A stretch of DNA of 64,000 nucleotides. Source: Amphiscolops sp. MND2022. Its lineage: Eukaryota. Below, piece after piece: positions 3,068 through 57,069 of this stretch (position 1 is the first letter of the stretch; every line of letters starts with the position of its first letter). A program made the position numbers and the translations under genes. The stretch lies in NCBI GenBank assembly GCA_964187785.1, contig OZ076414.1, positions 55,676,001-55,740,000 of the forward strand, in the 5' to 3' direction. Below the pieces are notes generated by a model. It did not search any database and had not been told where the DNA came from. It was given only the letters and a program-made list of their open reading frames with translations.

Positions 3068-6000
3068 CTAAAACATCTTGGTGTCCATAACTGGAATAAT
3101 GACACGCAGAAACATTTTGTTTCTCATGGGTTTGTTTTTAATAGTTTTTTTAAAGTTTTCTTCAGAAAACGTCCCTTATAAGTTTGTTCATGCCACGATT
3201 TAACGATAATTTACCATTTGGACTTTGGGTGGTATGACTCCTCGCCTCGTATCATCAAAACAACCCGTTTAAAAATGTTTTGAAAATAACAATTCGGTGA
3301 GACCAAATGGTCACCCCTTGAATTTTAGTGAGACTTTCATAGAAACTTTTCCATAGATGGACCACAACCTGATAATTTCACATTTATGTGATAAAGCAAA
3401 AACTAGAAGAGCCCAAAGGGTTTTTGGGTCATTTGGGTCTCTGAGAGGTCAAAACATAAAATTGAAATAAATATAACACAAAATTGAGAAAATTGAGATT
3501 CTGAAGAATAAAAAGACCATGCTCAATATTCCAAACCTCTTCAATTGGGACTAAAAACTCGATCAGCTCAGCCTTCATGTACACCTGTTGCTTCTCAATC
3601 TCCGTGGGCTCTTCGCTCACAAAGGTGGCTGTGATGTCTTTGGAGCATGACGCGTGAATGTGTCCCTCTTGCGGCGAAAACTTGATATTGGTGACATCAG
3701 AAGGCCAGGAGAAGCGGTAACAGTTTGAAGAGTGGTTCACAAGCGTGAACACAATCTGTTTTTCTGTCTTCGTGAACACTTGCCCGAAATTAAGACTGTT
3801 GTAGTCTAGGACTGAAACGGACACAAAAAGATTAGCTTATTTGGATTGACAAATTTTGTTTTGGTTCTCAAACAAGGAAATCAAGGAAATGATGTGAACG
3901 GGTGAAACTACTAGCTACCTATTAGCTGTTAGGTTGTGTATAAAAATACTCGGGAATGAAAGATTCTTAGCGAAGGAAATATGTTAAGGGCAACTCATTG
4001 TAATTATTATTCGACGTCACACAAACCATATTTAAAGAAAGAACAATTTTTTTCTACTGTGAAGCGTCTCCGTGATTTCAAACGTACCAAAGAAGAATTA
4101 GGAAGAAAGAACTTGGGTAGAAACAAAATTGTTCGGACACCAGAAAAGATCTTGGGCATAATTAATTTGACCAATTGAACGAAGAAGATAAGTTGGACAT
4201 AAACAGGAAATGAAAAAGGCCAATAAATGTGAATAATGCAATCAAATTGCTCCGACAGGATCAAATTTATCATATCTATTTTCAATAATCTTTTCACAAT
4301 TGGGCGCAAATTTCTATTCGTCTCTTTCAAAATGGTTCAATTTTCTCCTCGAACATAATTGAAGATTTTTTAAATGTTGGTTTCCGAAGAAGTCAAGGAA
4401 AGTTATTCGAATACCGGAACAGGCAAAAGCCTTATACAAGTATGGTCTGAACTAATGATGACAGAACTTGACAGCAACAGTGAGCAATGAACACAGGATG
4501 GGCAGCAGCAACGATAGAGATCACAAAAAACACACAACAAAAAATGTAGTAAAAACAAACACGAAGTGAAGAAAGCCATGGGCTGTGGACGATGGTGCTC
4601 CGAGGACACAAGAGATGACCTTCCCATGCCTTGTGACCCCAACAATGCGTGACTGACAGTCTCAGGTAAAAGGGAATTGGAGGAACCCCCCGGGACTACA
4701 GTGCCCCCTGAAGACGACGCGGCGTTTTTTGTGGGTGGTGCTAGATGATTAACAACAGAAGAGGTGGGGGACACACGTGCAGCTATCTCTACACCTTGTG
4801 GCCCCGCCCCTCCCCCAACTGCAGAGGTGGAGGAAGGGGCGACTTCGACTGCACTACCTGCGGAAGAGGATTGGCGGGGAGATTTGGCACCTCCCCCTCC
4901 ACCTGTTGTCATTCCTGGTTCAGTGAGGCCTTCCTCGCCGGTTCCAGGGAAAGATTCTTCAAATTCAAATGTTGAACGATGACCAATTTTTGTGGTTGCA
5001 AGATAACAACATAATGGGGGTAAATATCCGCTCATACAATTTAAAAAACCATGCATCTTCTCGAAAAAACTCTTGAAATCGAATGACCCAATTTTCTAAG
5101 TGAACATAACCATAGATAAAAATAAAATTTTGGTTTTGATGTAGAAGCCAAAGAAAGTTGTTGAAAAACGATTGAAGTTCATCTCCGATTCGATGGAATG
5201 AGGAGTTATATTGGTGTTCAACGTGGATATCAGAAAAAATGGCATCTAGTTCCAGAGGCCAAAAACTTCTGCTAACTAACCAGCATCGGAATCATCAATG
5301 ACGTCACTGTCAACTTCGCCCTCTTCTTCGATCTGATTGGTTGCAAGAACAGAGCCAATAGGAAGGCCGCTGATGTCTTTGATTGTGTGGATGTTTTCTA
5401 TCGTGATGTCTTCCATATATCCTTCGCCCAAGAGAACCACAGAGACATCTTCGAAGGGATTGTCTACTAAGGAGATTTGGATTTTTCCAATGAAACGAGT
5501 TGCCTCAGTGGGTGTGAAAGTCACATCAAATATTGCTTCTTCGCCCACGCTGAGTACTAGCCCGTACTTATGAGAAGCTCCTTCTTCTACAAAAAGAGGA
5601 AAAATTGTTGACCATTCACTTCAAAACCCTGAAGCGGAACCTCGCTGAAAATGAAAAACTAAGAAAACAACGTCTACGGAAAACATCTTTTTCATTCGGA
5701 AAATTCTCGTTTTTACGATTCTAAGCAACCTATAGGTACAACGCCCAGTGCCACAGCCACCACTTTTTAACTTTGCTTTGATGTTTTTGAGATGGTTGGT
5801 AAAACATAACACACATCAGAGTAACCAGAACTGAATCCTAGACTCTGACAGTACACAGTTGAATGCATTTGTTGAAACTATGTGAACAGACTCGGAATTG
5901 AGCTGAAAAAAAACAATTCAGTTTTTCTACGATGATTCAGAATTAATACTCGAATTTACCTTTTGGAGAGTAGATGCTCTGGTTCGACGAGACTTGGGTA

Positions 6001-9000
6001 ACATGAAACACTCCATTCTCATCCAATGGGTCAATGTAAACTGTACTTCTCAAATTGCCATCATTCACAAGCACTAATTGCATGGTCTGCTCTTGACCAA
6101 CCAGAAGCCTTCGATACATCATCATTGGCATTGACTTTTTGTTTTTCAAAGTGGGTTTTACCACAGTGACCCGAGGCAAGTTGCCATCGCCCACGAGTTC
6201 AAAGGTCAAGGGTTTGAACTTCTGGCTCAGAGAAGCAGGCAAACCCTCGACCTGAGCTTCAAAGATGCCCCCGTAAGTTTGCATGGACAAAGGTTTGAAG
6301 GTGACTTCGGCGAAGTAAGAACTGTGAGGTTGCACGACCGCCTTTTTGACCTCTACGTCAAACACATCGTGAACCTTCTTCGAGCTGCTACTAGAAGTTG
6401 TGACCGCGTTGAAAGACACTTCACATTTGACCTAAAAAACACCATCGAAGTAATTTAGTGATGGGTTCGGGTTTGCGAGTTTCTAGAGAGTTGCAGTGGA
6501 TTAGTGATAGTATGGGGTAAAATTCAGAAGAAATTTTATTTTCTTTTGGGTCAAGTTCAAAATTCTTTTGGGTCAAGTTCAAAATCAAAAGAAACTTTCG
6601 ACGGAACAGATCTATATGCAATTGGACACGCGGGTATCCTAGTCAACGTTTTTGACGTTTATAAATAAGTGCCTCCCGAAACGAATCTGAAAATATAGAA
6701 AGATTCGCGTTTAAGACAAAGACAATGAAAGAATAATTTTACCTTGTGTGGGTTTGTAATCTTGAAGCGGGCCTTGGCTGATTTGCCAACAACGACGTTG
6801 CAGAAGGCGAACTTATTCTCGTCCTCGCTGTAAATTCCTTGAACATGTTCAATCTGCGAATAAAATGTCTTCAAATTAATGGGTTTCTGAACAGATTTGG
6901 ATGATAAAATTATACAAATCAATCAGAAAAAAATTGCCAATTCACAAGCTTCGAAATTGACTGTTTTTTTTATCCCAGAATCATTATTTCGCCATCACGC
7001 CAAAACTACCACTGTTGGTAGTAGACTTACCTGATGGTTTTTCAGGTACAGAGCCAAGCTGCGACACACAACATGTTCCTCAAAAATGGAGGCGACGTCA
7101 CAGGTGTTGAACCCTGGAACCACTGCATCAGCCAGCACGTGGTATGGGATCCCATCCGGATTGTCTTTCGGATCCCTGAAAACACATTTTGTCAAAGCTT
7201 ATTCTCTATGGAAACAAACCAGAAATCAAAAATCTCTAAAAAACTGTTATCTCGGTAACATTATTGCTGTATACCTTCAAATTGTTTTTTGAAATTTGTA
7301 ATGAAACCTCGAAAACTTGCCAAAAAATCACATCACCTCAAAGGAGCAGAAACATTTGTGGCTTAGTTACAGCTTTTGGTTTTGTTGATTTGTGACAAAA
7401 CTACCAGGTTTTGTTAATCTCTAATACAATTACAAAGTCTAGTTCCTTTGAAAAAATTCTGACTGAACAATCGAAATTCCGGACTGAGAGAAAACTAATT
7501 TCATGAAATGAAATACCTGTCCGATATCTCAATAGCAAATTCCTCGTCATGTCTTCCAATGGCATCCGGGCAACACTCCACTTGGATCACTTGCTGGGCT
7601 TTCGGCAGAACAACTCCGAAGGCCGGATTCAGGATGAAAGGTCCAGTCAGGAGTTTGACACCTGCCAGAGTGTGGGTGGCAGGTCCAGATGAGGTTCCGG
7701 CGGCTGTGGCCATGTCTCCCCTGAAAGTGGATTTGGACATGGATGACTTGTTGCCAGAGCGGGCTGTGCCACTCGTTGCTTCCAGAGATCGTCCGGCTTT
7801 GTTTGAATCACTGCAAAAGAAGGAGGTCACTTACAAAAACATCAGAGAAATAAAAAACTAGTTTTATATGCCTGAGTTTGAGAATTATATGAAAAAACTT
7901 CAATAAGGATTGATCGGAGTAACCTGTTTGTTGCGAAGGAAATTTTTATACACTCAGAGCTAATACTTAGGTTAGGATGCCGCATGCGGCAGCAAGAAAC
8001 AAAAAGAGAAAATAATCACAACAAGAAGCACACTTATACACTATCTTGTGCAGAAGAAGTTTTCCAGTGCTCAATGTGATAGTTTCCGCTTCAGGTTCTT
8101 AGAGTACCAAGCCCAGAGCAATCCAATTTTTGCGTGGATTTTGAGTAACAGAAACACTGAAGGCAGAACATTGGTGGTATGGAAAAACTTAAAGCCACAT
8201 TATTGAAAAATTTTTAAAGAAATTTTTGTGCTTATAAGAAGTGCTTATAAGAGTGCTTATAAGAAGTCAGGAATGTTTTGTTTCGAAAATAACAAATTAG
8301 CCGGTATTCATTGAAATCAAAACAATGCTAAAACAGTTTTTAAAAAAGGTCCAAAATATGGAGGTCTGGAAAGCACGTTGTACATATCTAACAAAAAATT
8401 GAAAAAAAGTTAGATAAGAGCTGGAATCGAACTGAAGACCTTTTTTTGAACATTCAATTTTAATATGCAAAACGAATGCACGATTCAGACATCAAAAACA
8501 ATCCCAAATCTGGCGATACTAACAAACACTTTTAAGCTCAAAAAACTTGTGCAGTCATGAAGAAAAACTCGTTTCTTTTTCGATATATTACGAGAAAAAA
8601 AGTTCATTGCAGAAAGATTCCTCAATTAATTTAACATTGACAAGACATTCCCCTTTCGTGCACACACAGACCGCGGTTTCAATGGCTTCAAACAAAAATA
8701 ATAGTGTTCACTCAGGGAAACGAAACCACACATGAACCAAAGTAGAAACAAAAACACACAGCACACAAGGGGGATCATTCTATAGGGTGAACATAGAGCA
8801 CCCACAGTTGATCAGGAACCGTAGAGGGCGCCGCGCTCTTTTCCCGCGGGGGAGGAACAAGAGTGGGAGCAGCAGCGACGGGAATAGAGGGCACCTCTTG
8901 GGGGTGCGTTGCCGATGACTCAGTGCTAGCAGAAGACACTCTTGAGTCTGCACTGATAGTACTACTGAAAACCAGCCAAACAGAACTCAAAATCATTCGC

Positions 9001-12000
9001 CCAAGAAACTATCGAAGTCAGTAGCAAAAAGTAAAACTTGAAGAACACCCCGGAAAGTATCTTTTTCGTATTTTAATACTTCGAAACAGAAACCAGTAAT
9101 TAGAGATTAAAAGCTATTAACTACATCTTAAATGTGAATCATCCTGATTAAAATTCTTTTTTATTTTAAAAGAATAAAATTATTTTAAAAAGGTTTGCAT
9201 GCCAGAAGACTAAAACTAAAAAAGAGAGAAAAAAGAACAAAACTAGAAGGCAAAACATAAGTTTGGGAACAAAGCTTTCAACACAACAACTGCGTATTTG
9301 ACAGAAAAGAGATAAAACTGAGCTTCGAAACTTGCTTCATCTTAGTCAATCTTTGAATAAAGTTAGTCAAACTCTAGCTAAATCAGGCCAGGGATAGATT
9401 ATTAACCGATATTTTCGAAATTTAGTTTGATATGTTTTGATGGAATTTGTTGCAGATATTAGGGCTTTCAACAAAATGAATTGCATTCACAGAAAACATT
9501 TGCTTCAACGAACTCAATTTTTCTCAAAATTTTTATACACAACAGAAGCGTACAAACTTTTGGTTTCATAAACTTTTATATTATTCGTCGTAACTTCACC
9601 GTATGAGACATTATCATACGATTAATTACCCATCCCTGGACAAAACCATGCATGTAATGTGATCGATGCCATGAGGCATCAGTAAAGGGAACCTTTTGGC
9701 TTTGCTGTTTGTAGGAAGAAGTGCGTCTTCTGAGACAGGTTTGGTTATGTTGAACTTGAACTCGAACTCTCCCATGTTTTCTATTGCGAACTGCAGTTGT
9801 CGCTTGGAGTTGACGATGATGGACCCGAAATCGATGTCACTTCTGGGCAGCAGGGCATACTTGGAGTAGAGTGCCCTCACTGCTATCTTGATGGGGATAC
9901 ACGCAATCGTTTCCCCTCCACTGCCGGGCGCTGTGTTTGGATCTATTATCTGAAGACACCAAAAACCCGTAAATGATAAACTGGCATCGGACAAAGATAG
10001 TGCGATATCTAAAGGTTGGAATCATTACTTGTCAAAACTGCTTGAATGACGTGGAGTCTTTAATCAACCAGTTTTCGATTCGATCAACCCATCATTTAGA
10101 CATAGAAAGTTATCAAAAAGTAGATGTTTCGCAGAGGTTCCAAAACAAGAATATGAAAGTTTAGAAATTTTTCAAACACATCCCTATGTGAACACCGCAG
10201 AATAAAAACGACTGAAAATTCAATAATTAAATCAGAGATGAAATGAACAGCATGAAAAACACATCACATGAACTAGAGGTCACAAAAAACTCAACAAGAG
10301 TATCACTTCTTGCATGTTTCTGTGTTTTCTGAAGCTGTTTACGGGGTAGCACATGGTATTGACTGGCGAAAAATCGCCCGTTTTGATTTGCGTGTCGCTT
10401 ATCCGCTACTACTAATTGTAAGCATGGCATCGCTTCCGCTTAGCGACCCCGCTAACGCTATTAGCAGGTCAATTCACTGGTGTAGTACTAACATTGCATT
10501 TGATGATGGGCAGGTTGTTGATGTTGACCTCGTACTGGGAGACGAAGGTTATCTGCACTGTGGTCGGTCTGTCGTTGGGAAGAAGGGAGCCCCTGTTGGG
10601 ATACACACTGAACAGCTTCTCCATGTCTTCCGCATGTGCCCCCAGCTTCTCAACTGTCAGACTAAACAACAAAAGGAAAATTCGAGCCAGTGGAAGTCTA
10701 CTTTTTTAACTGAGACTCTTTTACTCTTTCCTGTTACCCCCCCCCTCAAAAGTTTACCACTTCAAAATTGTTTCTAAGTAGTCTGATCAAAAGTGAAACC
10801 TTTCTGCTTAACAGGAAATTAAATTCTATTAGAATAGTTTTTGTTTGAAATTTTTTTTACACATTGTGACTGTCATTAGTAGTAGTATGTGTTCCAATGT
10901 GGCCGGTATAAAGTGAGGAGTTCATTTACCCGAGAACTGTCCTATTTGAGTCAAATAACCTGTGAAGGTCATCGGACTCGATGAACTAATTATTTACTCT
11001 ACTAAAAGAACCTGTCAATTTTATCAGACTAGCCGTTGGCGAAAGTAATTATTTACTCAAATAAAAGAACCTGTCAATTTTATCAGACTAGCCGTTGGCG
11101 AAAGTAATTATTTACTCAAATAAAAGAAGCTGTCAATATTATCAGACTAGCCGTTGGCGAAAGTAATTATTTACTCAAATAAAAGAACCTGTCAATATTA
11201 TCAGACTAGCCGTTGGCGAAAGTAATTATTTACTCAAATAAAAGAACCTGTCAATATTATCAGACTAGCCGTTGGCGAAAGTAATTATTCACTCAAATAA
11301 AAGAACCTGTCAATATTATCAGACTACCGTCATTTCCTCTAGTGCCCCGCGGCCGCTTATGTTCCAAACTGTCAATATTATCAGACTATCGTCATTTCCT
11401 CTAGTGCCCCGCGGCCGCTTATGTTCCAAACTGTCAATCTTATCAGACTACCCGTTGGCGAAAGTCAAATAATCAACTTTCTCAGGTTGTTTTAGAATGA
11501 GAGCTACAATTTTATCCAATCATATTCCGTCAAGATCAATTTCTACCAACTTTTCCAATTTTGAAACCTTACCATCATACCTCAATTTTTGTAGTCACAA
11601 ACAAGTTACTTAAAATACCGAATTTTTGTGAGGATGTTAGAAAGCAGGCGAGAGATTTTGCTCCGTCGGGCCAGGGAGAATGGGCTACCCCACCTTACGG
11701 TGAGGCAAGCCGAAGAAGTGAATGGAGAGAATGGAGACCGGGCGATCTGGTTGATCGTCCCGGCTGAGCATAGTGTCGTCACGCTGAAGAACTTCCCTGG
11801 GAAGCTTCCGAAGCAAAGTAAAATTACAGACTTTTACAAGTAACTTGTTTAGTCTTTTCAAACCCAGCCCTTTTAAGGGCTACCAGTGATTTTTCTTTGA
11901 GTTTAAAGATTGACTTTCTCTTTAAACTTAAGGTTCTGATCCGGTTTCCTTTGAACTTTGTGGAACGCCAACTACAGGTTAGTTATTTCTTTTTCTTCGA

Positions 12001-15000
12001 ATCCCAGACCTCGTAAGGTTCACCTGAGATTTTCTTTGAGGTTAAAGAGATTTTCATTCTCTTTAATCTTAAGGGTCTGATCTGGTTTCTTTTGATCTTT
12101 GTTTAATGTTAATTATATATCAGTTTTTTGCGTTGTGATATTATTGGTCAGAAATCACAAGAATGTACTTAACCAATGTAGAGTCACTCAGTTTATTGTA
12201 ACCAATCAAAGGAGAGTTATAGATTCTCTCTTTAGTCTGAACAATATCATTTTATTCTGCAATCATGCCTAAGAGAAAGTTAACTAGTCGTGAAAAAGTC
12301 GGAGCGGAGTTCGGAATCCATGAACACAGAGGCACTAAGGAGAGGTGTGCCATCTGTCTTACACTTCGGAGGAAATGTTGGTGCTCGTGGGTTAGTTGCG
12401 GAGTGTGTGACTTTGTCTTCTGTAGAGCTGTCTGCTCTCAGTACATAGACAAATGTCCACACTGTCGCTCTACCTCTCTGAACATCCAACAGGAGTCAGA
12501 GGACGATGTCATCATGTCATCGAGCGACTAGTAAGTCAACTTTCTTTTCAACCCAGCCCTTTTAAGGGCTACCCTGTGCGAGAGATTGAAGTTGAAATGT
12601 TATTGCTTTCAATTTTTTCAATTGCATTGGTTTAATAATCGAATAGTTAAATTTCTATTTCACATGTGGGAAAAAAACTTCATCTTGAAGAAATCCATGC
12701 AAATATATTTTTTCAAGAGTCTATAAAACCATACATTTCCAGAATCCTCATGAAAAATACATGTCAGAAAACAATTCTAAAACTTGAAAAAATGTTTAAA
12801 GAAATTTTTTAGTGATTTTAGTGGAAAATATTAAGGAAAAATGATTTTTTCAAAAGTCTATAAAACCATACATTTCCAGAATCCTCATGAAAAATACATG
12901 TCAGAAAACAATTCTAAAACTTGAAAAAATGTTTAGAGAATTTTTTTAGTGATTTTAGTGGAAAATATTAAGAAAAGATGATTTTTTCAAAAGTCTATAA
13001 AACCATACATTTCCAGAATCCTCATGAAAAATACATGTCAGAAAACAATTCTAAAACTTGAAAAAACGTTTCGACAAAAATTTCTTGAAAAATTTCGAGA
13101 AAAAATGAAAAAAAATCAAAAAAAAATATTTTTTAAAAGTTCATTAAACCATACATTTTCAGAATCCTCATAACAAATACATCCCAGAAAACATATATAC
13201 AACTCAAAAAAACGTTTCAACAAATATTTCTCGAAAAAATTCGAGAAAAAATGAAAAAAAAATCAAAAAAAAATATTTTTTAAAAGTCCATTAAACCATA
13301 CATTTTCAGAATCCTCATAACAAGTACATCTCAGAAAACATATATACAACTCGAAAAAACGTTTCGACAAAAATTTCTTGAAAAATTTCGGGAAAAAATA
13401 TGAAAAAAAATCAAAAAAATTTTTTAAAAAAAGTTCATTAAACCATACATTTTCAGAATCCTCATAACAAATACATCTCAGAAAACATATATACAACTCA
13501 AAAAAACGTTTCAACAAATATTTCTCGAAAAAATTCGAGAAAAAATGAAAAAAAATCAAAAAAAAATATTTTTTAAAAGTCCATTAAACCATACATTTTC
13601 AGAATCCTCATAACAAGTACATCTCAGAAAACATATATACAACTCGAAAAAACGTTTCGACAAAAATTTCTTGAAAAATTTCGAGAAAAAATGAAAAAAA
13701 ATCAAAAAAAAATATTTTTTAAAAGTCCATTAAACCATACATTTTCAGAATCCTCATAACAAGTACATCTCAGAAAACATATATACAACTCGAAAAAACG
13801 TTTCGACAAAAATTTCTTGAAAAATTTCGAGAAAATATATGAAAAAAAATCAAAAAAATTTTTTTTTCGAAAGTTCATTAAACCATACATTTTCAGAATC
13901 CTCATAACAAGTACATCTCAGAAAACATATATACAACTCGAAAAAACGTTCCGACAAAAATTTCTTGGAAAATTTCGGGAAAAAATATGAAAAAAAAATC
14001 AAAAAAATTTTTTTAAAAAAAGTTCATTAAACCATACATTTTCAGAATCCTCATAACAAATACATCCCAGAAAACATATACAACTCAAAAAAACGTTTCA
14101 ACAAATATTTCTCGAAAAAATTCGAGAAAAAATGAAAAAAAAATCAAAAAAAATATTTTTTAAAAGTCCATTAAACCATACATTTTCAGAATCCTCATAA
14201 CAAGTACATCTCAGAAAACATATATACAACTCGAAAAAACGTTTCGACAAAAATTTCTTGAAAAATTTCGAGAAAATATATGAAAAAAAATCAAAAAAAA
14301 AATTTTTTTGAAAGTCCATTAAACCATACATTTTCAGAATCCTCATAACAAGTACATCTCAGAAAACATATATACAACTCGAAAAAACGTTTCGACAAAA
14401 ATTTCTTGAAAAATTTCGAGAAAAAATGAAAAAAAATCAAAAAAAAATTTTTTTTAAAAAAGTCCATCAAACCATACATTTTCAGAATCCTCATAACAAG
14501 TACATCTCAGAAAACATATATACAACTCGAAAAAACGTTTCGACAAAAATTTCTTGAAAAATTTCGGGAAAAAATATGAAAAAAAATCAAAAAAAAATTT
14601 TAAAAAAAGTTCATTAAACCATACATTTTCAGAATCCTCATAACAAATACATCCCAGAAAACATATATACAACTCAAAAAAACGTTTCAACAAATATTTC
14701 TCGAAAAAATTCGAGAAAAATATGAAAAAAAAAATCAAAAAATTTTTTTTTCAAAAGTCCAATAAACCATACATTTTCAGAATCCTCATAACAAGTACAT
14801 CTCAGAAAACATATATACAACTCGAAAAAACGTTTCGACAAAAATTTCTTGAAAAAATTCGAGAAAAATATTTTAAAAAATAAAAAAAATTTCAAAAGTC
14901 TATAAAACCATACATTTTCAGAAACCTCATGAAAAATACATCACAGAAGTCAGTTGTAAAAGTGGAAAAAATGTTTAGAGGAAATTTTTTGTTGATTTTA

Positions 15001-18000
15001 GTTAAAAAAAAAAGAAAAGAGTTTTTCAAAAGTCTATAAAACCATACATTTCCAGAATCCTAATGACTCGAGAAATTATGAAGAAATTTTTTGAGATCTT
15101 TGGAATTAATTTACAAAAAACTTTCACAATACTCAAATGTCACTTGAAAAAAAATGGAAATGAAGAAAGTTTATTATAGAAACTCAGCAAAAAAACGTAA
15201 TATTAAACTATCACAAACGTACGATAAATTTCCATATTTGTAGAGTACATGGGCAAAATAAATACAGTATAGTCCACATAAGTCTTGTCTTTGCAACCGA
15301 AAATTACACAAGAGTTTCACTGATCGGTTCGAATTGAATCGTATCTTTCTGTAGTAGTCCAACGGTCTTCCCAAGGAATCACCAAAATAGAGTATTCCGT
15401 CTCGATCCGCAATCATCACCCAATGGGTTCCGGGTTCAGTACTCGAGTCGCTGTTAATTAAACAGAAACTATTTTTGTCAATATTAAATGGAACCATATC
15501 TGCGGGAAAAGATCCCAAATATTTATACTTCAAGTTTTTAATTTTCGAGACAATAGATAATAGTTGTTCATTATCCATTCTTAACAACTGTTCCACTTTT
15601 GTCTAAATAAATTGTTGACAATCGTTCACCGAGGACAATCACTTCAATTGTTTCAGTCAGTGCTGTCTGGAAGAAAAGTTCTAGTCTGAGACTGGCAGCG
15701 ACTACATCAGGATAATACATTTGGACATTAGCCTCTTGTGTGGAGGTCAGATCAAACACTTGGACGAAATGATTCTCATACTCTGACAAAGGTATGTTTG
15801 GACCATCATCCTCAAATTTTAGAGCTTTCATCGTGGTAACATAAGTCTGAACAATATTTCTTGTATCCATCCTGACAATAACTTGATTTCCCCTCACGAT
15901 TCGCACTTCTCTAAGATCAAATTTTCTATAGTGAAAAGGGTTTGTTCCCAAAGTTCCAGTGAAAGCAGTGTTTGTATTCATTGCGATAGCTATTCGCCTA
16001 ATTGGTGCATTGTTGAAAATGTTCTCGTGAATAAACTGGTTCTGGTTGTTTGGAATAATGAATGTTTTACTAAGAACCTCTGTAAAGTTGTAACGAGCTG
16101 GTCTCTCCTTGATTGTTGCCTGGATAGTACGGATACAAGGTTCATCCACTGCAACTACTCTAGTAAAAAGAGAAGCTTCCTTGATTGTAGCATGGAAATT
16201 CTTTGTTTGGGTACTAATGAGATAAAAATTCGGTCGTGAACGAATGAGTCGAATTCTAACTTTGATATTGGGTAGAAGAAATTTGTCGCAAGTGAACACA
16301 TCGATCGCTAGCTTTCCATAAAACATTTTTTCTCCAGTGTTCACTGTCATTACTTTCCCCGTGAAAGGAGCGGAAGTAAAGTCGTTTGGGATATTTTCAT
16401 ACTGGTACCCTTGACATATTCCAATAGAATCTTTCAGACCTCGAGTTCCAGAAAATTCATTTGAAATTTGTGCTTTGTGAGGATACAATCCATTAGAAGT
16501 ATAAATTTGTTCATTGTTGAAGTAAACTTCACAGTTGGAGAAAAGCGAATGTAACGCATTGTTACTGAACATGACTTCATCTGCGTTTTCTAAGGCTACG
16601 CCATCCTTTTTCACTTCAACTTTCAATAGTAAATAAGTTTCCTGTAAGTCCAACATTACATTACGATCTGTCTCTAGATGGAAATCAATACTAGCTTCAT
16701 TCAGTGAATTAGTAGGGAAAGTCTGTTGAGTGTTGGACCAAAGAATAGGTTCCAAAATTGGAACTCCATCAAAAACATCTATTGAGGAGTGATTCACAGG
16801 AGTGGGTACAGACATTACTCTTTAATCTTTTTAAAGAAATCTTCGCGACTGCGTTTTCTCTTCTTTCGTTTAGAAATGAACCTTTTTGCTTTCCCTTTCG
16901 ACCTCCTAATTTTTTTCCGATGACCTCCTCCAATTTGTTTTTTTAATGTTGAAGAAGCTGTTTTCCTGATTGCTTTTTTGACGGATGATTTTCCGCTGAG
17001 GACATCCTCAACTTGCGGTATGGCTATATCGATAGCATCTCTTCCAATTTTTTTTGCAGCTGGTACAACAAAGCGTTTCAAGATAGGAAAAGCGGTACGA
17101 GCAATCGTACCAGCAAGTGCTCCGAGTCCTCTCCCTCGTTGACGTGGAACGCCACTAAAGTGAGGTAAATGAACATTTCTCATGATCAGATTGGAATCGA
17201 GTCTTTGGGACTAGCTTTCGTTTTTCTGAAAAGTAAAGTGAGTCGTGTTATGCCGACTGCAACGAAAGGGATTAATTCTCCTGTCGGACTTCTCAGTTCA
17301 ACTTTGATTGAATGTATTGAATTTTTCAAAAGTCTTCTGAATTGTAAATTGTCGAACGAAACATAATTGGAATACTTTGTGACGGATATAGAATCTCTTT
17401 GAATTTTATTATTGAACGGAAAGCATCTCAGAATTGGAGCTTTGGTATCACCAATGATTGAAAATTCAACGATATCAGTGTATACCATGACAGAGTGGAA
17501 ACGCAGAATATCTATTGGAAACTCACTCCTGTGAGGACCTTTGCTACTAAACCACACTGACTGACTAAAACCCAGTATCGAACATAAGTCCTGACTAGCG
17601 AAAACTAGTTGTGACTTGTCAGATGCTAACTCAATTTCACAGTGTCTAGTAATTGAATCAACCTTCCATTTTAGTTCGACACTTTGTCTGTTGCGCAACC
17701 TGAGTGCATCATTCATCGACTGAAAAATCTCATCTAATGATAAATACATTCCAGGCAGAATAGTCACAGATTCGTAAGATTCATTCAATGCTTCCCTCGT
17801 TTCTTCATTGTTGCTTTTTTTGGAAGTACTTCTCTGTGGTACGTACCAAAATTTACCCTCAGTAATGTTGTTATAAAGAGCAGGGTAAGTGATTTCAAGA
17901 AGAGCTACCTCCCAATCACCATCTAAGTACAATTGTTCGGGAAGAAAATTGGTAAACGAAGCAAGTGTATTGTCAGGGTAAATAGAAGAAGAAGCGTTCG

Positions 18001-21000
18001 AAACCAACTCGACAATAAAGTTATCCATCTGTCAAGTGATTTGACGAGACAATTCTGATTGGTAAAACTTTCCCAAAATTGTTTCTCCAGTCTGATCTTT
18101 GATTATGTAGGTAACAATAGGGTAGCGAGTAGCAATTTTAGTAATAGTGAACAATTCATCTGTGAATTGGGATTTATATCCTCGTCGAAAGGCTTTATCA
18201 ACTTTTGCGATTCGGACTCTGTCTCCGACGGAAAACTTTGCTTTACTTTGTCCAATTTTGAGAGGGTTGTACGAATTTCTGGCACCATACAAAACCTGAA
18301 GAAAATGTTCGTTCATCACATGCTTAGGTGCTAAGTTGGTGGCCGAGGACACGCGTGAATTTAGTGTTTCAACGAATGCGGGAAGCTCTTTCAAGTAATT
18401 GAAAGTATTCTTCTCCTCTAGATAACGATAGATAACATTTTTCAAGGATCGGATAACTCTTTCCGCGTAGGCTGCTTTAGTTTCACTGTTTGTATGATAA
18501 ACGACAATACCAACATCTTCACAAAAATTTTTAAAGTCACCGAGGAACTCTTTTCCACGATCAATCCAAAGTTTCTTGGGAAAATCCAATCCACTTGACG
18601 AACGTCCACACATCTTGACAAATGCATTTTCAGTACTTTTCGCACTCTTCGATTTCAGAGGTTCTACACGAACGAATCGTGAAAAAATGTCAACTGCAAC
18701 CAGTAAATACTTAACTCCTGAATTGTCAGATGCTAGTTTATCCATTTGCGCTAAATCCAGGCACCAAATATCATTGATAAATCTAGCTCGAGCAGAAAGT
18801 CGAACAAATTTTCCTCGTCTCTGTTTAAACTTTGTATAAGCACTCTTTGATTCGAGAAACGTTTCTACTTTCTTACGGGTAAGGCCACTGCTTTTACATA
18901 AACTTTTGATTGATCCATATGCTGAAGGACCTTTTCTGTACAATTTATTCAATTGTAATCTTTCAGAAAGCGTAATAGACCCATCCGGCATTGTCGTCAT
19001 TAAAAGCTTTAGAATTTTGAACAGTTGTTGGATCAAGATCTAGAACATTCAAAATTATTGTGAAGCGTGGATCGAATTCACCTTTCTTGCGTGTCAAGTT
19101 TGAAATAAAGTCCTCCACATCAATTTCAGTGTCAATATCGTCAACTATTATAGTTTTGTTGATCGAAAACTTGATGGAATCGTTCGTTGTCAGCTTTTTG
19201 AGAATTTTTTTTGCCGAGGAATTGTTCTTGTATTTATTCTCCAAGGTTTCTTCGAAATTGGGTAGCGACGATTTCAGAGGCGAATGGGGAGCAACTTTAC
19301 TAGTTTTATATTTAGGTTCAAAAACCATCGACTTACGATCAGTCTTCGGGGTTAATGACCCTCCTAATTTGAGATAAACTTGTCCTGGTGATTTTTCTTT
19401 TGTAGTTGTGGGTTCGAAGTAACTGTTGAATCGATTTTCCCACAAAGATAAGGGAATCAAGACAAACTTACTTTTGTCCATCAATCAAAATTATGTGCAA
19501 ACTTTTTCAAAACGCAACCACCAATCAATCTGATTAGCGAGAGTCCCTTCTCACTAGCTAGCAAAGCACGTCTTGTTCTCACAGAAGTCTTTGGGGAAAT
19601 TATCCGAATGATTAAAGATTCAAACCGTTTGATTTGCTTTCTCCGAATATCACAGAGATTCCCTTCTAGTAGATTTTTAACACACTCACATAAGAAACGA
19701 AGAAAGTCTTTGGAACATTTTTTGAGGAAAATTTTTTGGAGGGTTTTGTTGAAAGTCAGAAAGAGCTTCAGAGTAAAGTAATTCAGTGGTTTGATCATCT
19801 AACTCACACTGCCGAGCTCTACTGCTAGGTAGGTAAAACTGCGAAGGAAATGAAGTACAGTTTGTACAATAACGTATGAGATCATGAGTTTTTGGACTAA
19901 GGTCAATCATCAAGTGACCGAAAGGTTTTGTAGTAGCATCAATGTACCAATCTACTAGTTGACGTCCAATTCCTAATTGACGACTGAGAACTTTTACTTG
20001 TTGTACGTCACGCGGCGATTTGAAAAGAACAATATGCGTATTTTGTAGATCTATATCCCTACCGTTAGAGGATTTGTGAAAGAGATTGTGTTTAATGTAA
20101 ATACAACTCAACTTTTTGTGTCTTCCTGCAGTAGCCAAGTCGATGAATTTTTGCGATTTGTAAATTTCTTGACAGGAATCATCGAACACTAAAAGATAAT
20201 TGGTTCCATTATCTGGTAGATTGTCAATTAGATCAAAATCTAGCGATCCGATGAATTCTAACTTTGGAAACTCGCGAGTCATTTGTTCAAATAGAGGTTG
20301 ACTGTGTTTGAAAAAATACAAAACTTTGTCAAACTCAGGGAAAAAAGTTCTGCTTTTCAACATATCGAAAATCAAATGGGACTTTCCACAACCAGATGGA
20401 CCTACTATAGACATGAAAATCCTGTCTTTGGTGGAAATAATTTTGTTCATGTTAAGGTCTCGGAGAAGGTAAGATATAGCCAACAGCCCACGTTAAAATT
20501 GCAACCCAAACAGTTGACTCTTCACAAGAATTTGATAAAGCAATGCAAGTGATTGACGTTGAAACTAAAATGAAAATTAATAAACACTGAAAGAAAAAGA
20601 GGCTTGCGGATCTCGAACATTCTCGTCCCAAAAAGAACCAAGGTGATCGTTCTTGATTGTTTGAGTCAAACACAATCTGTTGAGGTGTAATTGTTTCCAA
20701 ACCATCAACACCATCACTCATTTCCGTGATCCAACAAACTAGATTTTGTGGTTGAATTTGGATAATGAGGAGACGATCATGATTTTGAAACAGTAAACCT
20801 AATCACACATCGAAATCACTGAAAAGCTTGGAATTATAGAACTTCAAATAGAGACAATAAAATAAACCAGTAATGTGTCCCAATAAACAAGAATTTGGTA
20901 GAATGGTATTGCTTTTGAAAACGTAACAATATCCGGCTCCTCTTGAATACGTTGTTTTCATGAAACCAGATGCGTCATGTAAAACTGCATGCATTCGGAA

Positions 21001-24000
21001 ACACTTCAGTCCACTGAATACTGCCTCGAGAGTTGAGTCACCAATTCCTATCAAACCGCCGAAAGGAGCTTGTCGATCAATTTCTATTAAATCAACTTCT
21101 GAACTGATGGAGAGACAACACGCCAAGAAAAAATTTTTACGTTTAGAATTTTTCTGGAAATGAGTATTGGTGGATATTTCTTTTTCAAGTGACAGAATCG
21201 AGTTCAAATTCATTGTTAGCCAAATGTTCACTGAGACTGTTCCAAAATGTCAATTTCAGGTACTGATATTGTTGACGTACAAAATTGTTTTAGTCGCAGG
21301 TATTCTTGACTAGAAAGGGCTAAGCTATTGATTGTAACAAACTTTGTCTTTTTAAATTGTTTAACTTCAATTTTACAGTTTGCAATTTTGTTATCTGTAC
21401 CCCAGAATGTCAATTCAAGTCTCCGTCTTCCGTTCGAATATTTGAAAGACTTGGAGTCTTTTATTGAGACAATTTCAATTTCTTTAGGTAACAGACTCGC
21501 TTCCAGTAGACTTAATTGTAAATGAAATTCAGGCTGACACTTGGATCCAAAAGTTTTGCACTCAATGAATTCAATTGTTCTTTTAACTTTTTTCCTTGTA
21601 ATAAGTTTTCTATTCTCTCCTATATCAATCATTATTCTATCCGACTCAATTCTAATGAAAAATGATTCATAATGAAAGCTCGATTATTTTTCACACGACG
21701 AGAAAGATGAATACAAAATACTTCAAAATACAACCATAACGAAAATAAAAAAGAACATTTAATCAAACTCTAAATGTGAATGTAGAGTTTTTCTTCCACA
21801 TTTTGTACTTTCTCAGTGATTCTCTCACAACTGCTTCCATCAGTTGACTATCGTGTCGTATTAGTTCCTCGAGTTCACCAACTCGCAGACTGAGTGCACC
21901 TTTCCGGATGAATTGATCATGTGTATCATTTCTAGTGTAGAGTTTCAATTGAATATATGTCTTTGAATAGTCGGTATTGTCATAGACTTTGAGGGACGCT
22001 CCCACAAATCGTCTCGGAGACTCACAAATATCCCAAAATTTAATTCCTTTCTCTCGATCTTCTTCCAAAGTAGGGAAATTGGACGGAGAATGACTTTGTG
22101 GGAAGTCTTGAATGTCTGTTCCATAGTTTGTATCTCCTTTGATGCACTCAAATTGTGTGTGAGAATCTTTATTGATTCGTTCCATACTTGACAATAATTG
22201 ACGAGTTTCATATAGAGAAAGAATAACGAGTTGATGTACTTTGTATTCCCCTCTGTCCTTCTTGAGAAGTTTGAAATGAACCCAGTCCGAAACTGTTTCC
22301 CTCTCATTTGAGTATTTTGGAATGTATACTCTAAGAGTTCTGAAAGGTACGAGGGAAAAGTCCCAACAATTTTCTTGTTCCAAAACTCCAACAGAATCTC
22401 GTTCTCTGTAATTGTTCAATGTTCGAAGTCCCAAAGTCCCAACTCCCATCTTAGGCTCAGTATTGGGTTCACTTGATGAAATGGAGGAAAGACTTCTTTT
22501 CATCTTGGTTGAATGTTTCAGGTAAAAGTAAAGTTAAAGTAGCTAGTAAAAAGATTAATAATTTTATTTATAATGAAGATGGAAGTAGATGTACCGAGTT
22601 CTTGAATTCCAGTTAAAAGGTGAAATAATGTTGAGTAGAATGACGAGTTGAATATTGACGTGACTATAATTGAACAAATGAAAGATTTCAAAAATCTGAT
22701 TCGCTTACACTTATGCTCGTTTGCTTGTCCTCGAGAGGACCAATCAAAAGGTTCGAATCATCGTTCTCGTCTCTCGTGTCTAGTCGGTGCCTCTTTCCTT
22801 CAATGGCCGAAGTTCCCATTCGCGGAATTCTCCTTTTGCGAGTCGCGACATTATCGTTGGCAGTTGACTGAGTGAATGAACTCTGATCGTTCAGTTCCCA
22901 GGCACCTTCCAACCTTTCCATGTCGTCTAAAAGTCCCAATTGATTGGCTGACAGCGGACAACGTGATAAGTCATGTTCGTAGAAAATCTCTCTCACACTT
23001 GGAGATATTGATTCACAATTCGTTACAGGTTGTAAAAGTAAGGTTGGGGTAGGGTCCAAAAATTGATGGCTAGGAATATTTTTGCGATGTAAAACTAACG
23101 ATGATAAGGCTACATCACTTTCTTGTTTCACACAGTGCATCCAAAGGTGGGACATTGAGAAGAGAACATCAGGAATGCAAATTTTGTTTGACACACTCCA
23201 ATCGTCCTGAAAAATTCGACTCTCTGTAACAAATACAATCTCTCCATTAGCTTCGTCCCAATGAAAAGTGATCTTTTCTTTGTCAGGTATTGTTTCAAAG
23301 CTGAATACTTTCATTTTAACAGTAGAATGAAATTTTAGGTGTCTAGTCTGGAGGAGATATGCAATGGAATGACTGTCGCCTGAAATCAATCAAGACGACC
23401 AACTCTCCAATAACAAAAATCTGTGATTGGTCACGACTTGGAATTTTCACTCTCTATCACACATTTGGAGAGGAATATCTTCTAGTGAAATCAGAGAATT
23501 AACTTCATTGGCTGTCACTCTAAATCATGAACTCGATCAAACGATTCAACACTTTCTCGCGAACCAATCAGAATTTTGTATTCGAGTTTATTATTTTCAA
23601 AATTAAAAGGAACTGACTAATTCAAAAGTTCCTACTTTTCACTCGCGATGCGTCATTTTTATCATTTCATTTTGCAGATAAAACCTTTCGTAGTACTTCG
23701 TTACTTTTCATTTTTGTAATAAATCTTTTCACTTTTGTGAATAACATTTTTCATGGCTTGTGGAACCCCCGATTTATTTCCACCTTTTTTTCAATCTTTC
23801 ACAGACTGTTGTTTGTTGGTCATTTTTGAATCTCAACCTTCACAAATCGACTTGAATAATTTCGAACAGTACGTCGTCGGTTCACATACAAAAATTTGTA
23901 AACAAGTTAACTGTTCTACTCACATAATTTTCTTTGATTCTCTCATACATTCCAAAGTAACCAAAATTTTTACGTCTACGAGTTTCAGATCACAACAGGT

Positions 24001-27000
24001 TGATTGTCTATTCACTGCGTTTAAATTTTATTTCACCGAAATTGTTGATCTGAAAGGTTCTATTTTTCAGAAACTGTTGGCTGCTGTTCACTTTCATCAA
24101 AGTCTACCTTATCCATCATTGAAACAACCTAGTTTGGCAAGAAAAAGATTATTCCGTAAACGATTCAAATTTCACTTTGCTAAAGCTATTTCTTCAAGAA
24201 GTATCCCTGGACCACGATTCAACGCAGACTTAATATCCAAAGTTGAACAAATCGTTTATTCACCTGTGGGTCTCGAATTTGTGAAATTAGTGGATTCACT
24301 ATCGTCTGGACAAAAAGTTACCCTTGATCATTTGCAGACCATCTTATCGCTCAATTAATTTACAAGATGCCGCACGATCGCAAGCAGTGTGACGTTTGCA
24401 ATAAACTTATTGCGAAAAATAATTTTGCTCGTCATATTAAATCTCATCAACACCGATGTCCAAATTGCCCCAAGACATTTGGAAAATTGGTGAGATTACA
24501 ATATCATATTGCAACAAAACATGGTGCAAATCGTGCGAAATCATTCGTTTGCAGAGTGTGTCATCAACCTTTCCAGACCTTTCATCAACTATCTTTCCAC
24601 AATCGTTCCCAACATCAAAATTATCCTTCAGCCTCCAACGTCAACAAGGAAATAGATCTGAGTGAATTCAACTCCGATCCAAATCTCTTGAGTGAGATGC
24701 GTACTGTACAACATTTTCTTACAGACTCAAAAATCCAAACAAGTAGGAAAATTGTTTATAATTTCAGACTGAATTCGCTAGATGAAAAGTTCATTGATGA
24801 GAAATTGGACTTTATCCATTCTGAACTTCCTTGTGCAGCAAAACTCAACTTTTCGTTTGGGTTTGTCTTGCAAAACATTCAGAACCTCGGCGAGTTTCGA
24901 TACTTTTACGCTGAGAATAACAATCCCGTTTTTCATTTCCCAGTCATATTTTCCACATTAGAAGACTTAGAATTTATCAAGGATCGTTATGAAGATGAAA
25001 ACGTCTTCGAGAGTATTATTCAACAGCGTCCAGACACAAAATGGCGATTTTACTGTGTGACTAATGTGACTTTCTTTGTTTATCTGATGCCTCGAGTTGC
25101 ACTTGGTTGTACTGATGTAGATTTACCCAATGCTTTGATTCGCAATAAGAGTGTTAAATGCTTTCTCTCCGACAGTAATAGCAACCCGTATCACGACAAT
25201 TTGTGTCTTTTTCGCGCTATAGCATTCGATCTTCATGGGAGTGAGAACTTGTCGAATAATACCCTTCTCTACTTCACATCGTTCTTGAGCGAAAGTGGAC
25301 AAGATGCAATTGATTTCCCTGGTGTTTCGCCAGAGGAAATTCCTCTAGTAGAAAAAATTACATCAGTTAATTTGAATATGTTTTCTTTGTATTACAATGA
25401 AGAAGGGTTACTACATGGGGAACTCTCACGAAGAAGTGCAGGACTTTTCAAGAAAGGACTATCTTTAGTTCAGTACAACAACCACGTGTGTTGGGTCAGT
25501 AACATCAACACTCTCTTGAAAAACTTCAGATGTCACAACTGTGACAAGTATTTCACAAAGAGCTCTCTATTGGATCGTCATTTGCTGAGTTGTGATGACA
25601 ATGTTAAACACACTTATCCCAATGGACCGTACGAACTTAGAGAAACAATTTTCGAGAAGCTGGAGGATATAAACATTCATGTTGAGACGGAGAGACGATT
25701 GTTCCAAAATTTAGCTGTGTTTGACTTTGAAGCTCTCGCTGTTCCACTAGGAAGCAACACTTCCAATCAAGAGAACACAACATGGATAGCTCGCCATGTT
25801 CCAATAAGCGTAGCTATTTCATCTAATCTTTGCGATCAACCTATTTTTATCTGCTCCAGTGATCCCAGGGAACTTGTCAGTCGGTTTGTCGATGAACTCA
25901 AAAAGATATCGGAAAAGAGTGCAACGCAATACAGAGATTTGTTCAAAAACGAACTCGATGAGATTGCAAAACGTGTTAACCATCTGATAGAAAAACTTCC
26001 TAGAAGAAAAAGACGACAACCTACAAATGATAATCTCCTAGATGAAGCTCACGAAGACAACAACGAAGAGATTGATGATGAAGACATTCAGAATGATCCC
26101 AATCTCATGGGTTTATTTCAGGAAAAAGAAACACTCACTCGAGTTTTATTGGAGTTGGAAAAGTACTGTGACTATCTACCTGTATTCGGATTTAACAGTT
26201 CGAAGTATGATCTGAATCTAATCAAACAGTATCTGTTGGAGTATCTCCTACTAGAACACGAATGTTCTCCATCGGTAATTAAAGTTAGCAACAAGTATAT
26301 TAGTTGCAGTTTCATGGGAATTCAGTTTCTAGACATTTTGAACTTTCTCGGAGGAGCAACATCCCTCGACAAATTTTTGAAAGCTTATGGTGCATCGGAA
26401 GAGAAAGGATTTTTTCCCTATGAATGGTTCGATGATGTAGTTAAATTGGAACAACCGTGTCTGCCCCCAGCTGAAGCGTTTTTCAGTAAATTGAAAAACT
26501 GTAATGTTCTTGATTCTGACTATCAACATTACATTCAGTTATTGAATCAAGGTGTTGCTGTTCCTGATGCTTTGAGAAAGCTTGGTTTGAAGGAAATACC
26601 AAAGACTAGAGAAGAGAACTATGAAGCCTTGGAAAGAATCTGGATTGAAGAAGGCATGTTGACGTTTCGTGATTTCTTGGAATGGTACAATGTTAAAGAT
26701 GTGAAACCTACCCTTGAAGCTATGTTGACGATGATGAAATTTTATCATGATAGAGGTATCGATATGTTGAAGCTTGGTTGTACTCTACCAAATTTAGCAA
26801 ATCGTATTCTTCATTCCTCGACAAACTTCAAATTCTTTCCATTCATCGAATCAGATCGACAGTATGATGATTATATTCGAAAATGGTTAACAGGAGGTCC
26901 ATCTATCATATTCACTCGATATGCGAAAGTGGGGGATACAAAAATCAAAAATTCTTCCAATGTCTGCAAAGCTATTGTTGGAATTGACGCTAGCCAATTG

Positions 27001-56316: not shown

Positions 56317-57069
56317 TTAAGTTGAAAGGGGGGCATACAGGGTATTTATGACTTTTACTTCGAAAAATATGGAATTGTTTTTTAGCCAGGGGTTCTCTGG
56401 GTTCATGAGTTCATCATGTGGGATGAAGCACAAGATGGTGATTGCTGTGTTGCTGGTTGTGGGAATAGGTTTCTTGAAGCACTCACTGTTATTGTTATTC
56501 GTCACAATGAGCTGTTTGTAGGGTTTGTAAATATTGCCTTGACCAAGGAGGTGTATCTCGATAACGCCTTGGAAGGGCCAAGTGAGTATCTCATCGTAGG
56601 GTCCCGGACACATAGCCAAGCATACTGACATGTATTTCCCTTTGGCAGTGTCGATGCCATAAGGGTAAGCTCGTAGATGAAAGGTGTACCCAAAGGGTTG
56701 TGAGAAGAAGATAGGGCTACAGACGTCTTTTAGGCTATTAGGATCACAATAGGGTGCTCTTACATGAGACAAACTTTTTTCGTATTTTTCAGCATTCTGA
56801 AAAATATCAGAAAATTGATCAAGCCTCCAAATAACTTTGTAGAGGTTCCAATCCCGTGGAATTGATTTCTTTTCGATACGAAGGATTCGCATCTCAAGTG
56901 CGTCGAGCTTTTTACTGATCTCGTGTATCATATCAGAATCAAATGTGTCATCTTTATATTGGGTGATATTGAGTTTTTGTCGAAGCAATAGTAACTCATT
57001 GATTAGGGAGTCCGTAAGGGACCTTTCATCTTCCAATTGTTCAATAAGGGTAGATGAGCTTGTGTTCAT
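56317..57069 (-). CDS. TRAF-like protein: coiled coil + MATH/TRAF-C domain, no RING or zinc fingers (250 aa)
   Basis: VIWRLDQFS, SPIFFSQPFGYTFHLRAYPYG, GKYMSV, GPYDEILTWPF, F.KP, FIPHDEL, LKNNSIFFEVKV follow the TRAF-C consensus. Confidence 0.9.
   Translation of the reverse strand: MNTSSSTLIEQLEDERSLTDSLINELLLLRQKLNITQYKDDTFDSDMIHEISKKLDALEMRILRIEKKSIPRDWNLYKVIWRLDQFSDIFQNAEKYEKSLSHVRAPYCDPNSLKDVCSPIFFSQPFGYTFHLRAYPYGIDTAKGKYMSVCLAMCPGPYDEILTWPFQGVIEIHLLGQGNIYKPYKQLIVTNNNNSECFKKPIPTTSNTAITILCFIPHDELMNPENPWLKNNSIFFEVKVINTLYAPLST

Follow-up and report, generated by a model that had tools for sequence, protein, structure and literature searches.

[quoted passage not shown] This metazoan 3' stem-loop (Rfam RF00032), which is processed with the U7 snRNP, has a stem of six base pairs and a loop of four bases (preprint 10.64898/2026.10.14.759114), with a G-C pair at stem position 2 that provides the only base-specific SLBP contact (PMC10388802; preprint 10.64898/2026.10.14.759114), and lies shortly after the stop codon (metazoan median 30 nt, typically 23-31). 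The mature mRNA ends 3-6 nt after the hairpin. Two adenines directly 5' of the stem and one adenine 3' of it are needed for full affinity of human SLBP (PMC10388802), and a purine-rich element complementary to the host U7 snRNA follows at a fixed distance. In Caenorhabditis elegans the histone hairpin has a G-C basal pair and the loop CTTT, with a binding protein that is specific for the first loop base (PMC1924863, Table 1). Polintons (or Mavericks) are self-synthesising transposons with terminal inverted repeats (TIRs), a retrovirus-type (rve) integrase, an A32/FtsK-type packaging ATPase, a protein-primed family B DNA polymerase, an adenovirus-type cysteine protease and a double jelly-roll capsid protein, and our literature searches found no paper that links them with histone stem-loops or histone-type 3' ends, and no report of a PIP-box protein or of an IAP-like RING protein in these elements.

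We analysed a window of 64,000 nucleotides from Amphiscolops sp. MND2022 (GCA_964187785.1, contig OZ076414.1, positions 55,676,001 to 55,740,000), in which a preliminary description had noted the same histone-type hairpin after two unrelated open reading frames (ORFs) of a Polinton. That observation is confirmed: the 22-mer CCCAGCCCTTTTAAGGGCTACC occurs exactly twice in the window, in both cases on the + strand, with no other match at up to 3 mismatches and 0 expected in 100 shuffles, and the stems begin 22 and 23 nt after the stops of ORF1 and ORF2. A loose scan (6 pairs with G-U allowed, at least 3 G-C pairs, loop TNTN, AC flank) finds only these two sites in the window, as does an Rfam scan at E<=10 for Histone3. 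The CCAAT boxes noted before ORF2 are also present (P about 0.007 for the cluster), although CCAAT precedes ORF1 as well. To this account we add that the identity covers a 31-32 nt module, that a third, degenerate copy follows no ORF, and that the 5' flank, and not only the basal pair as had been stated, departs from the histone consensus. Coordinates and supporting evidence for each feature are given in the table.

Features of the Polinton and of its left-end genes (positions are those of the window)
Position	Strand	Feature	Evidence
about 10878-29554		TIR-bounded Polinton, about 18.7 kb	
10878-11470	.	Left TIR with sub-terminal 59-bp and 62-bp tandem repeats	Inverted repeat arms 10878-11213 and 29219-29554, 336 nt, 96% complementary; tandem repeats at 10987-11330 and 11307-11452
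11516-11565	+	Upstream region of ORF1: CCAAT boxes (11516, 11555), TTTGAA (11560)	Conserved in the copies at locus L048; promoter function inferred
11634-11843	+	ORF1, 69 aa, C-terminal PIP box QSKITDFY	Paralogues keep the motif (QLKITEFF, QLKITDFY); Ka/Ks 0.41-0.57; no Pfam family
11853-11884	+	3' module 1: pyrimidine tract, hairpin 11866-11881 (AGCCCT/TTTA/AGGGCT), ACC; 22-mer at 11863-11884	RF00032 19.8 bits; hairpin present in the minimum-energy fold
11902-11926	+	Second A/T-rich hairpin (8-bp arms) holding the purine run AAAGATTGA (11905-11913)	Run starts 21 nt after ACC
12006-12021	+	Degenerate third copy of the hairpin, inside a tandem duplication of the stretch that follows module 1; follows no ORF	Lacks the loop U1 and a Watson-Crick pair at stem position 2; the L048 u-type units lack this duplication
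12143-12224	+	Upstream region of ORF2: ATTGG (12143), CCAAT boxes (12173, 12202), TATAGA (12218)	Nearly invariant across copies
12265-12531	+	ORF2, 88 aa, 10 Cys, IAP-type RING-like	Ka/Ks 0.11-0.32; best PDB sequence matches all RING domains (XIAP, cIAP2, Arkadia), E 0.03-0.23; no Pfam family
12543-12573	+	3' module 2: pyrimidine tract, hairpin 12555-12570, ACC; 22-mer at 12552-12573	RF00032 19.4 bits
12580-12591	+	Purine-rich tract GAGAGATTGAAG, candidate histone downstream element	Starts 7 nt after ACC; identical in all intact copies
12707-15066	.	148-bp tandem array (about 16 copies) between module 2 and the minus-strand gene block	
15174-23389	-	Minus-strand core genes, including a protease-like ORF (15174-15596), a 414-aa presumed capsid ORF (15571-16815), the rve integrase (18032-19036) and the A32-type ATPase (19686-20483)	Pfam rve E 2.8e-11 and Pox_A32 E 3.3e-06, both above their cut-offs; Peptidase_C5 weak, E 0.016, below its cut-off; the 414-aa ORF has 1140 homologues but no family or structure assignment
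23753-28707	+	201-aa ORF and 1446-aa ORF (presumed protein-primed DNA polymerase B with N-terminal C2H2 fingers)	No direct Pfam polymerase hit; homologues at loci L002 and L004 carry weak or faint DNA_pol_B_2 hits; zinc-finger matches
28980-29554	.	Right TIR	

The element shares with Polintons its TIRs, rve integrase, A32-type packaging ATPase and size of about 18.7 kb, and it has a large polymerase-like ORF and a weak adenovirus-type protease match. ORF1 ends QSKITDFYK, which fits the PIP-box consensus Qxx[L/I/M]xx[F/Y][F/Y] (PMC13604413), a motif that usually lies in a disordered tail, and which is kept in three paralogues and in the ORF1 homologue at locus L047. The PIP-box reading of the preliminary description holds at the level of sequence motif. 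RING fingers have eight zinc ligands in cross-brace spacing, and the RING-like reading of ORF2 is in line with database matches, although these are weak, and an AlphaFold model of ORF2 (pLDDT 46) was too poor to be used in a structure search. Searches with ORF1 and ORF2 of a collection of 5.8 billion proteins found no homologue. An exhaustive search of representatives with ORF1 gave four hits, one of which (P0121, locus L052) is a 312-bp satellite in a large genome and a false positive, and a match of ORF1 to a C-type lectin neck repeat is likewise spurious. Scans of viral contigs yielded no locus with the hairpin and one distant locus with a relative of the 414-aa ORF. Host ORFs carry TRAF-MATH, PAN and CFAP65/hydin-like domains, showing that the host is an animal.

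RF00032 is the only relevant family hit at both sites, on the coding strand only, the hairpin matches it better than any other Rfam family, and for this single pre-named family E is about 2-3e-4 in the whole window. However, both sites score 14 bits below the gathering score of 34. The six-base-pair stem, four-base loop, G-C at stem position 2, U at loop positions 1 and 3 (the loop is TTTA in all intact copies), U-A at the top of the stem and ACC on the 3' side, which includes the 3' adenine, all fit the histone pattern, and the distances from the stop lie at the lower edge of the metazoan range. The basal pair is A-U instead of the G-C of the consensus. Nevertheless, an identical stretch of 19 nt, AGCCCTTTTAAGGGCTACC, A-U pair included, lies 31-43 nt after ORFs with the Pfam Linker_histone domain (E about 1e-28) in three metagenome contigs (L006, L013 and L030), where RF00032 gives 32.7-36.4 bits, and it is also found in contigs L016/L022, next to 5S rRNA genes. 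The hairpin is therefore a natural histone variant, and the deficit in score comes from the flanks. The contigs with H1 genes have an A-rich 5' flank and a purine run starting at +11, whereas in the window the two 5' adenines are replaced by CC, with the A run 3 nt further upstream. The purine-rich tract starts at +7 after copy 2 and +21 after copy 1, while other loci with the same hairpin cluster at +10 to +12 (mode +11 in 35 loci), such that it is 4 nt too near in one case and about 10 nt too far in the other. With the C. elegans hairpin, five of the six stem pairs are the same, as read from the published table. No RF00032 hit reaches the gathering score in 109 kb of further contigs from the same or related samples.

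Both ORFs are under purifying selection, and diverged paralogous copies in the same genome keep the hairpins. In a paralogous unit with a Ks of 0.43-0.59, the ORF2 3' block is 64/66 identical, against 88% in the spacer and 85% in the ORF (P 0.01 and 0.002), and the only two changes in hairpin 1 compensate, from C-G to U-A. Covariation nonetheless rests on this one event and is not significant in a shuffle control (37/500), and neighbouring non-coding DNA is also well conserved, so that for hairpin 1 the block is no better kept than the spacer (P 0.48). Non-compensated changes in hairpin or flank are seen only in units whose ORF2 is broken (locus L046 and unit u2 of L048), although in L048 u2 ORF1 is intact yet its hairpin has one unpaired position. 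The duplicate hairpin that follows no ORF has lost the diagnostic bases. The motif and both ORFs are absent from the more distant relatives examined (L003, L004, L051 and L053-L055), and they are also absent after the ORF1 homologue in L047, which confines the arrangement to one element lineage in one genome. We do not count the absence of AATAAA/ATTAAA after the two ORFs as evidence, because most other genes of the element lack these signals too.

We suggest that the two left-end accessory genes of this Polinton, encoding a PIP-box protein and an IAP-like RING protein, carry a copy of the animal histone mRNA 3' stem-loop as their 3' end signal. Under this hypothesis, host SLBP would bind the hairpin in their transcripts, which would be cut a few nucleotides after it and stay without a poly(A) tail, and their amount and translation would follow host S phase, when PCNA and nucleotides are available for the element's own protein-primed replication. 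Our analyses establish the sequence identity to a natural H1-type histone hairpin, its position and strand, its conservation and one compensatory change, whereas SLBP binding, U7-dependent cleavage, the lack of poly(A) and coupling to S phase, as well as PCNA binding by ORF1, are inferred from sequence alone. The interpretation in the preliminary description, that these genes are expressed as histone-like mRNAs, is thus only partly supported: we regard it as plausible, about as likely as not, and previously unreported, while the low scores, the missing 5' adenines, the placement of the purine tract and the restricted distribution weigh against it.

Among alternative explanations, all of which we consider unlikely, the least so is that the module is a relic, in which a piece of a host histone (H1-like) 3' flank was captured once, duplicated with the 3' UTR, and persists without a role in expression because the copies are related and partly homogenised. 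The two copies share the module and similar UTR sequence from the stop onward, as a duplication would leave, a third copy exists inside a tandem duplication, the left-end module is prone to tandem amplification, and the restricted distribution and off-consensus flanks are also consistent with this view. However, the hairpins stay perfect or compensated despite the synonymous divergence between the units, the ORF2 3' block is better kept than spacer and coding sequence, and in the u-type units hairpins 1 and 2 differ, so there is no ongoing homogenisation between them there.

A second, slightly less likely possibility is an RNA hairpin that acts without SLBP/U7, for example as a 3' UTR stability or translation element, or as a pause signal, on ordinary polyadenylated mRNAs. 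The hairpin forms in the predicted folds, the compensatory change fits any RNA helix, and the atypical downstream element and missing 5' AA would be accommodated. Yet the exact identity of loop, helix orientation (purines at the two bottom 5' positions, pyrimidines above) and ACC with real histone hairpins would be unexplained, and the fold z-scores of the UTRs, which include an extended pairing between the upstream pyrimidine tract and the downstream purine tract, are ordinary (-1.15 and -1.74). Least likely is a DNA-level signal, a near-palindromic binding site for a dimeric host or element protein acting in transcription, replication or recombination at the element's left end, since although the 16-mer is palindromic apart from its central 4 bases, the compensatory change preserves this symmetry and the site lies within about 1.7 kb of the TIR in a region of tandem amplification, both copies keep the same orientation relative to their ORFs and the same distance from the stop (22-23 nt, and 22 nt in the u1 unit), the central TTTA and the flanks (CCC and ACC) are asymmetric and invariant, and there is no copy in the right TIR region or in promoters.

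A broader and more doubtful reading is that mobile elements in animals have repeatedly taken over the histone mRNA 3' end pathway, with this Polinton using it for two accessory genes, and unrelated retroelement-like genes in other organisms ending in the same hairpin with a well-placed downstream element. In this view, histone mRNAs would no longer be the only class of SLBP-dependent, non-polyadenylated mRNAs, and selfish elements would have a direct line to S phase. For the element described here, a virus-like transposon that places this signal behind a predicted PCNA-binding protein and a RING-like protein would be the first non-histone, non-host user of the pathway, and would also show a simple way for an element with its own presumed DNA polymerase to restrict helper proteins to S phase.

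The two hairpins considered here sit at the left end of an element of ~18.7 kb, which is bounded by inverted repeats whose arms are 96% complementary (coordinates of all features are collected in the table below). The element encodes an rve integrase and an A32-type ATPase, together with a weak adenovirus-type protease match, a 414-aa ORF with 1140 homologues that is presumed to be the capsid protein, and a 1446-aa polymerase-like ORF, whose homologues in related copies carry weak DNA_pol_B_2 hits and whose N-terminus matches C2H2 zinc fingers (PDB Sal-like and ZBTB proteins, E 3e-4 to 8e-3). This is a Polinton/Maverick, and its ORFs are uninterrupted. A tandem array lies between the accessory genes and the minus-strand core genes, and related arrays occur in three contigs that hold related elements or copies (L004, L046 and L048). 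The window matches a contig (ctg181185) of ENA assembly ERZ25074608, and flanking host ORFs carry TRAF-MATH, PAN and CFAP65/hydin-like domains, so the host is an animal. ORF fragments with weak CFAP65/HYDIN-type Ig-like domain hits lie on the left flank, within about 0.9-5 kb of the left end of the element, and the Polinton may sit in or next to a ciliary gene. Elsewhere in the window, a 702-aa ORF next to a TRAF-MATH ORF matches the rhabdovirus-type fusion glycoprotein family (Pfam Monjiviricetes_fusion, E 1.5e-39) and may be an endogenous viral or element-borne envelope gene, while a near-perfect hairpin or inverted repeat scores on both strands against microRNA precursor models, far below their gathering scores.

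Coordinates of the features discussed in the text (window positions unless a contig is named)
Feature	Position	Strand
Inverted repeat arms of the element	10878-11213 and 29219-29554	
ORF1, with C-terminal PIP motif	11634-11843	
22-mer, copy 1	11863-11884	
Hairpin 1	11866-11881	
Pyrimidine tract upstream of hairpin 1 and purine-rich tract downstream	11853-11861 with 11905-11913	
Third, degenerate copy, in a tandem duplication	12006-12021	
ORF2, Cys-rich	12265-12531	
22-mer, copy 2	12552-12573	
Hairpin 2	12555-12570	
Pyrimidine tract upstream of hairpin 2 and purine-rich tract downstream	12540-12549 with 12580-12594	
148-bp tandem array, about 16 copies	12707-15066	
C2H2 zinc-finger matches in the 1446-aa polymerase-like ORF	24367-24650	
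ORF fragments with weak CFAP65/HYDIN-type hits	5943-6419, 9626-9994	-
Near-perfect hairpin or inverted repeat	36176-36250	
702-aa ORF with fusion glycoprotein match, next to a TRAF-MATH ORF	57626-59734, 56317-57069	-
Amplified left-end module in another copy, same assembly	L048:1-8400 and L049:1-7700	

The preliminary description of a shared histone-type stem-loop shortly after the stops of two ORFs is confirmed by our analysis. The 22-mer CCCAGCCCTTTTAAGGGCTACC occurs exactly twice in the window, with no other match within three mismatches and none expected by chance, and the hairpins begin 22 and 23 nt after the stops of ORF1 and ORF2, respectively. The identity between the two sites covers a module of 31-32 nt, and the degenerate third copy follows no ORF. 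ORF1 ends in QSKITDFYK, a canonical PIP motif (consensus from PMC13604413), which is joined to a conserved N-terminal region of ~45 aa of unknown fold and is kept in all homologues; ORF1 may be a PCNA-binding helper for the element's replication, of which we found no report in Polintons. The only PDB sequence matches of ORF2 are RING domains of XIAP, cIAP2 and Arkadia, at weak E-values. CCAAT boxes, which had been described before the second ORF, precede both. In both 3' UTRs the pyrimidine tract just upstream of the hairpin can pair with the purine-rich tract downstream, enclosing the hairpin, yet the z-scores are ordinary and this may be chance.

At gathering thresholds, Rfam finds nothing in the window. 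At relaxed thresholds, the Histone3 model (RF00032) hits both sites, on the coding strand only, with 19.8 and 19.4 bits against a gathering score of 34, and these are the only Histone3 hits in the window. Over all 4227 families the E-values are about 1, while for the one family named beforehand they are 2-3e-4. An exact scan of metagenome contigs for AGCCCTTTTAAGGGCTACC returned 41 loci. In three of these contigs (L006, L013 and L030) the motif lies 31-43 nt after ORFs with the Pfam Linker_histone domain (E about 1e-28), and two more (L016 and L022) look the same and sit next to 5S rRNA genes; at these sites RF00032 scores 32.7-36.4 bits. The hairpin with its A-U basal pair is therefore a natural histone hairpin, and the 13-bit deficit of the Polinton copies comes from the flanks. 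Of the published determinants (preprint 10.64898/2026.10.14.759114; PMC10388802), the Polinton copies possess six pairs, a four-base loop, G-C at stem position 2, U at loop position 3 and one 3' adenine, but they lack the two adenines directly 5' of the stem, which are CC here. Furthermore, in loci that share the hairpin a purine run starts 10-12 nt after ACC in most cases, whereas in the window it starts at +7 after copy 2 and at +21 after copy 1.

Related copies exist only in the same assembly. One contig (L002) holds a 99% copy, and another (L046) a decayed copy, while L048/L049 hold a complete element, in front of which the left-end module (sub-terminal repeats, ORF1, hairpin 1, ORF2, hairpin 2) is amplified into three tandem units of ~1.7-1.8 kb plus two short units with a truncated ORF1. 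Between the window and the intact L048 copies, Ka/Ks is 0.11-0.32 for ORF2 and 0.41-0.57 for ORF1, with Ks of 0.2-0.6, and both ORFs are therefore coding. In a comparison of the window with the tandem unit u1, the ORF2 3' block (from the stop to 28 nt past the hairpin) is identical at 64/66 positions, against 88% identity in the spacer (P = 0.01) and 85% in ORF2 (P = 0.002). Hairpin 1 shows two changes in the same comparison, which compensate each other (C-G to U-A), and the chance of such a compensating pair is 0.02-0.03. However, this compensation is a single event and is not significant in the shuffle control, and the block around hairpin 1 is no better kept than the spacer. In L048 u2, where ORF2 has one frameshift, there is one unpaired position in hairpin 1 and a changed ACC after hairpin 2, whereas in L048 u3, where ORF2 has two frameshifts, both hairpins are intact. 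In L046, ORF1 has one frameshift and one stop, ORF2 has one frameshift, and there are non-compensated changes in both hairpins.

Elements with 56-69% identity in the 414-aa ORF (contigs L003, L004, L051 and L053-L055) have neither the two ORFs nor any histone-like hairpin. The closest non-identical relative of this ORF (69% identity) comes from a Tara Oceans metagenome scaffold (L053), which hints that the host lineage is marine. The only ORF1 homologue from another sample (L047, 49-60% identity) keeps a PIP motif, but carries one in-frame stop and has no such hairpin after it. Consequently, the feature is confined to one element lineage in one genome.

The best explanation, which we consider about as likely as not, is that these two genes use the host's SLBP-dependent histone mRNA 3' end pathway. 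The proposal of histone-like 3' processing in the preliminary description is only partly supported: the exact identity to real histone hairpins, the position after the stops and the conservation between copies are shown by our analysis, whereas binding by SLBP, cleavage and cell-cycle control are inferred from sequence alone. Among the alternatives, all of which appear unlikely, the one that survives best is that the module is a functionless captured histone flank, although the conservation at high synonymous divergence argues against it. Slightly less tenable is an RNA hairpin that acts independently of SLBP; the same orientation, the fixed distance from the stops, the asymmetric loop and flanks, and the exact identity to real histone hairpins argue against it. 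The same observations argue against a DNA palindrome bound by a protein, which is the weakest of the three.

Histone mRNAs are described as the only known animal mRNAs of this type (PMC4604434; PMC10388802), and full-text searches found no paper linking Polintons, Mavericks or retrotransposons with histone stem-loops. The same 19-nt histone-type hairpin also lies 28-42 nt after non-histone ORFs in further metagenome contigs (L005, L010, L014, L039; L024, L026, L043; L020; L017, L023, L028, L029, L032, L034, L037, L038, L042), mostly with a purine run at +10 to +14. One ORF family among these has an RG-rich start and a coiled-coil-like middle, L026 has a reverse-transcriptase ORF (RVT_1) upstream of the hairpin-bearing ORF, the L020 ORF has a GDSL-esterase/OSK-like domain, and another group shares a repeated 3' module. 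Retroelements may also use this signal. If the histone-type reading of the Polinton hairpins is true, it represents a known signal in a new setting, and would tie a predicted PCNA-binding protein and a RING-like protein to S phase.
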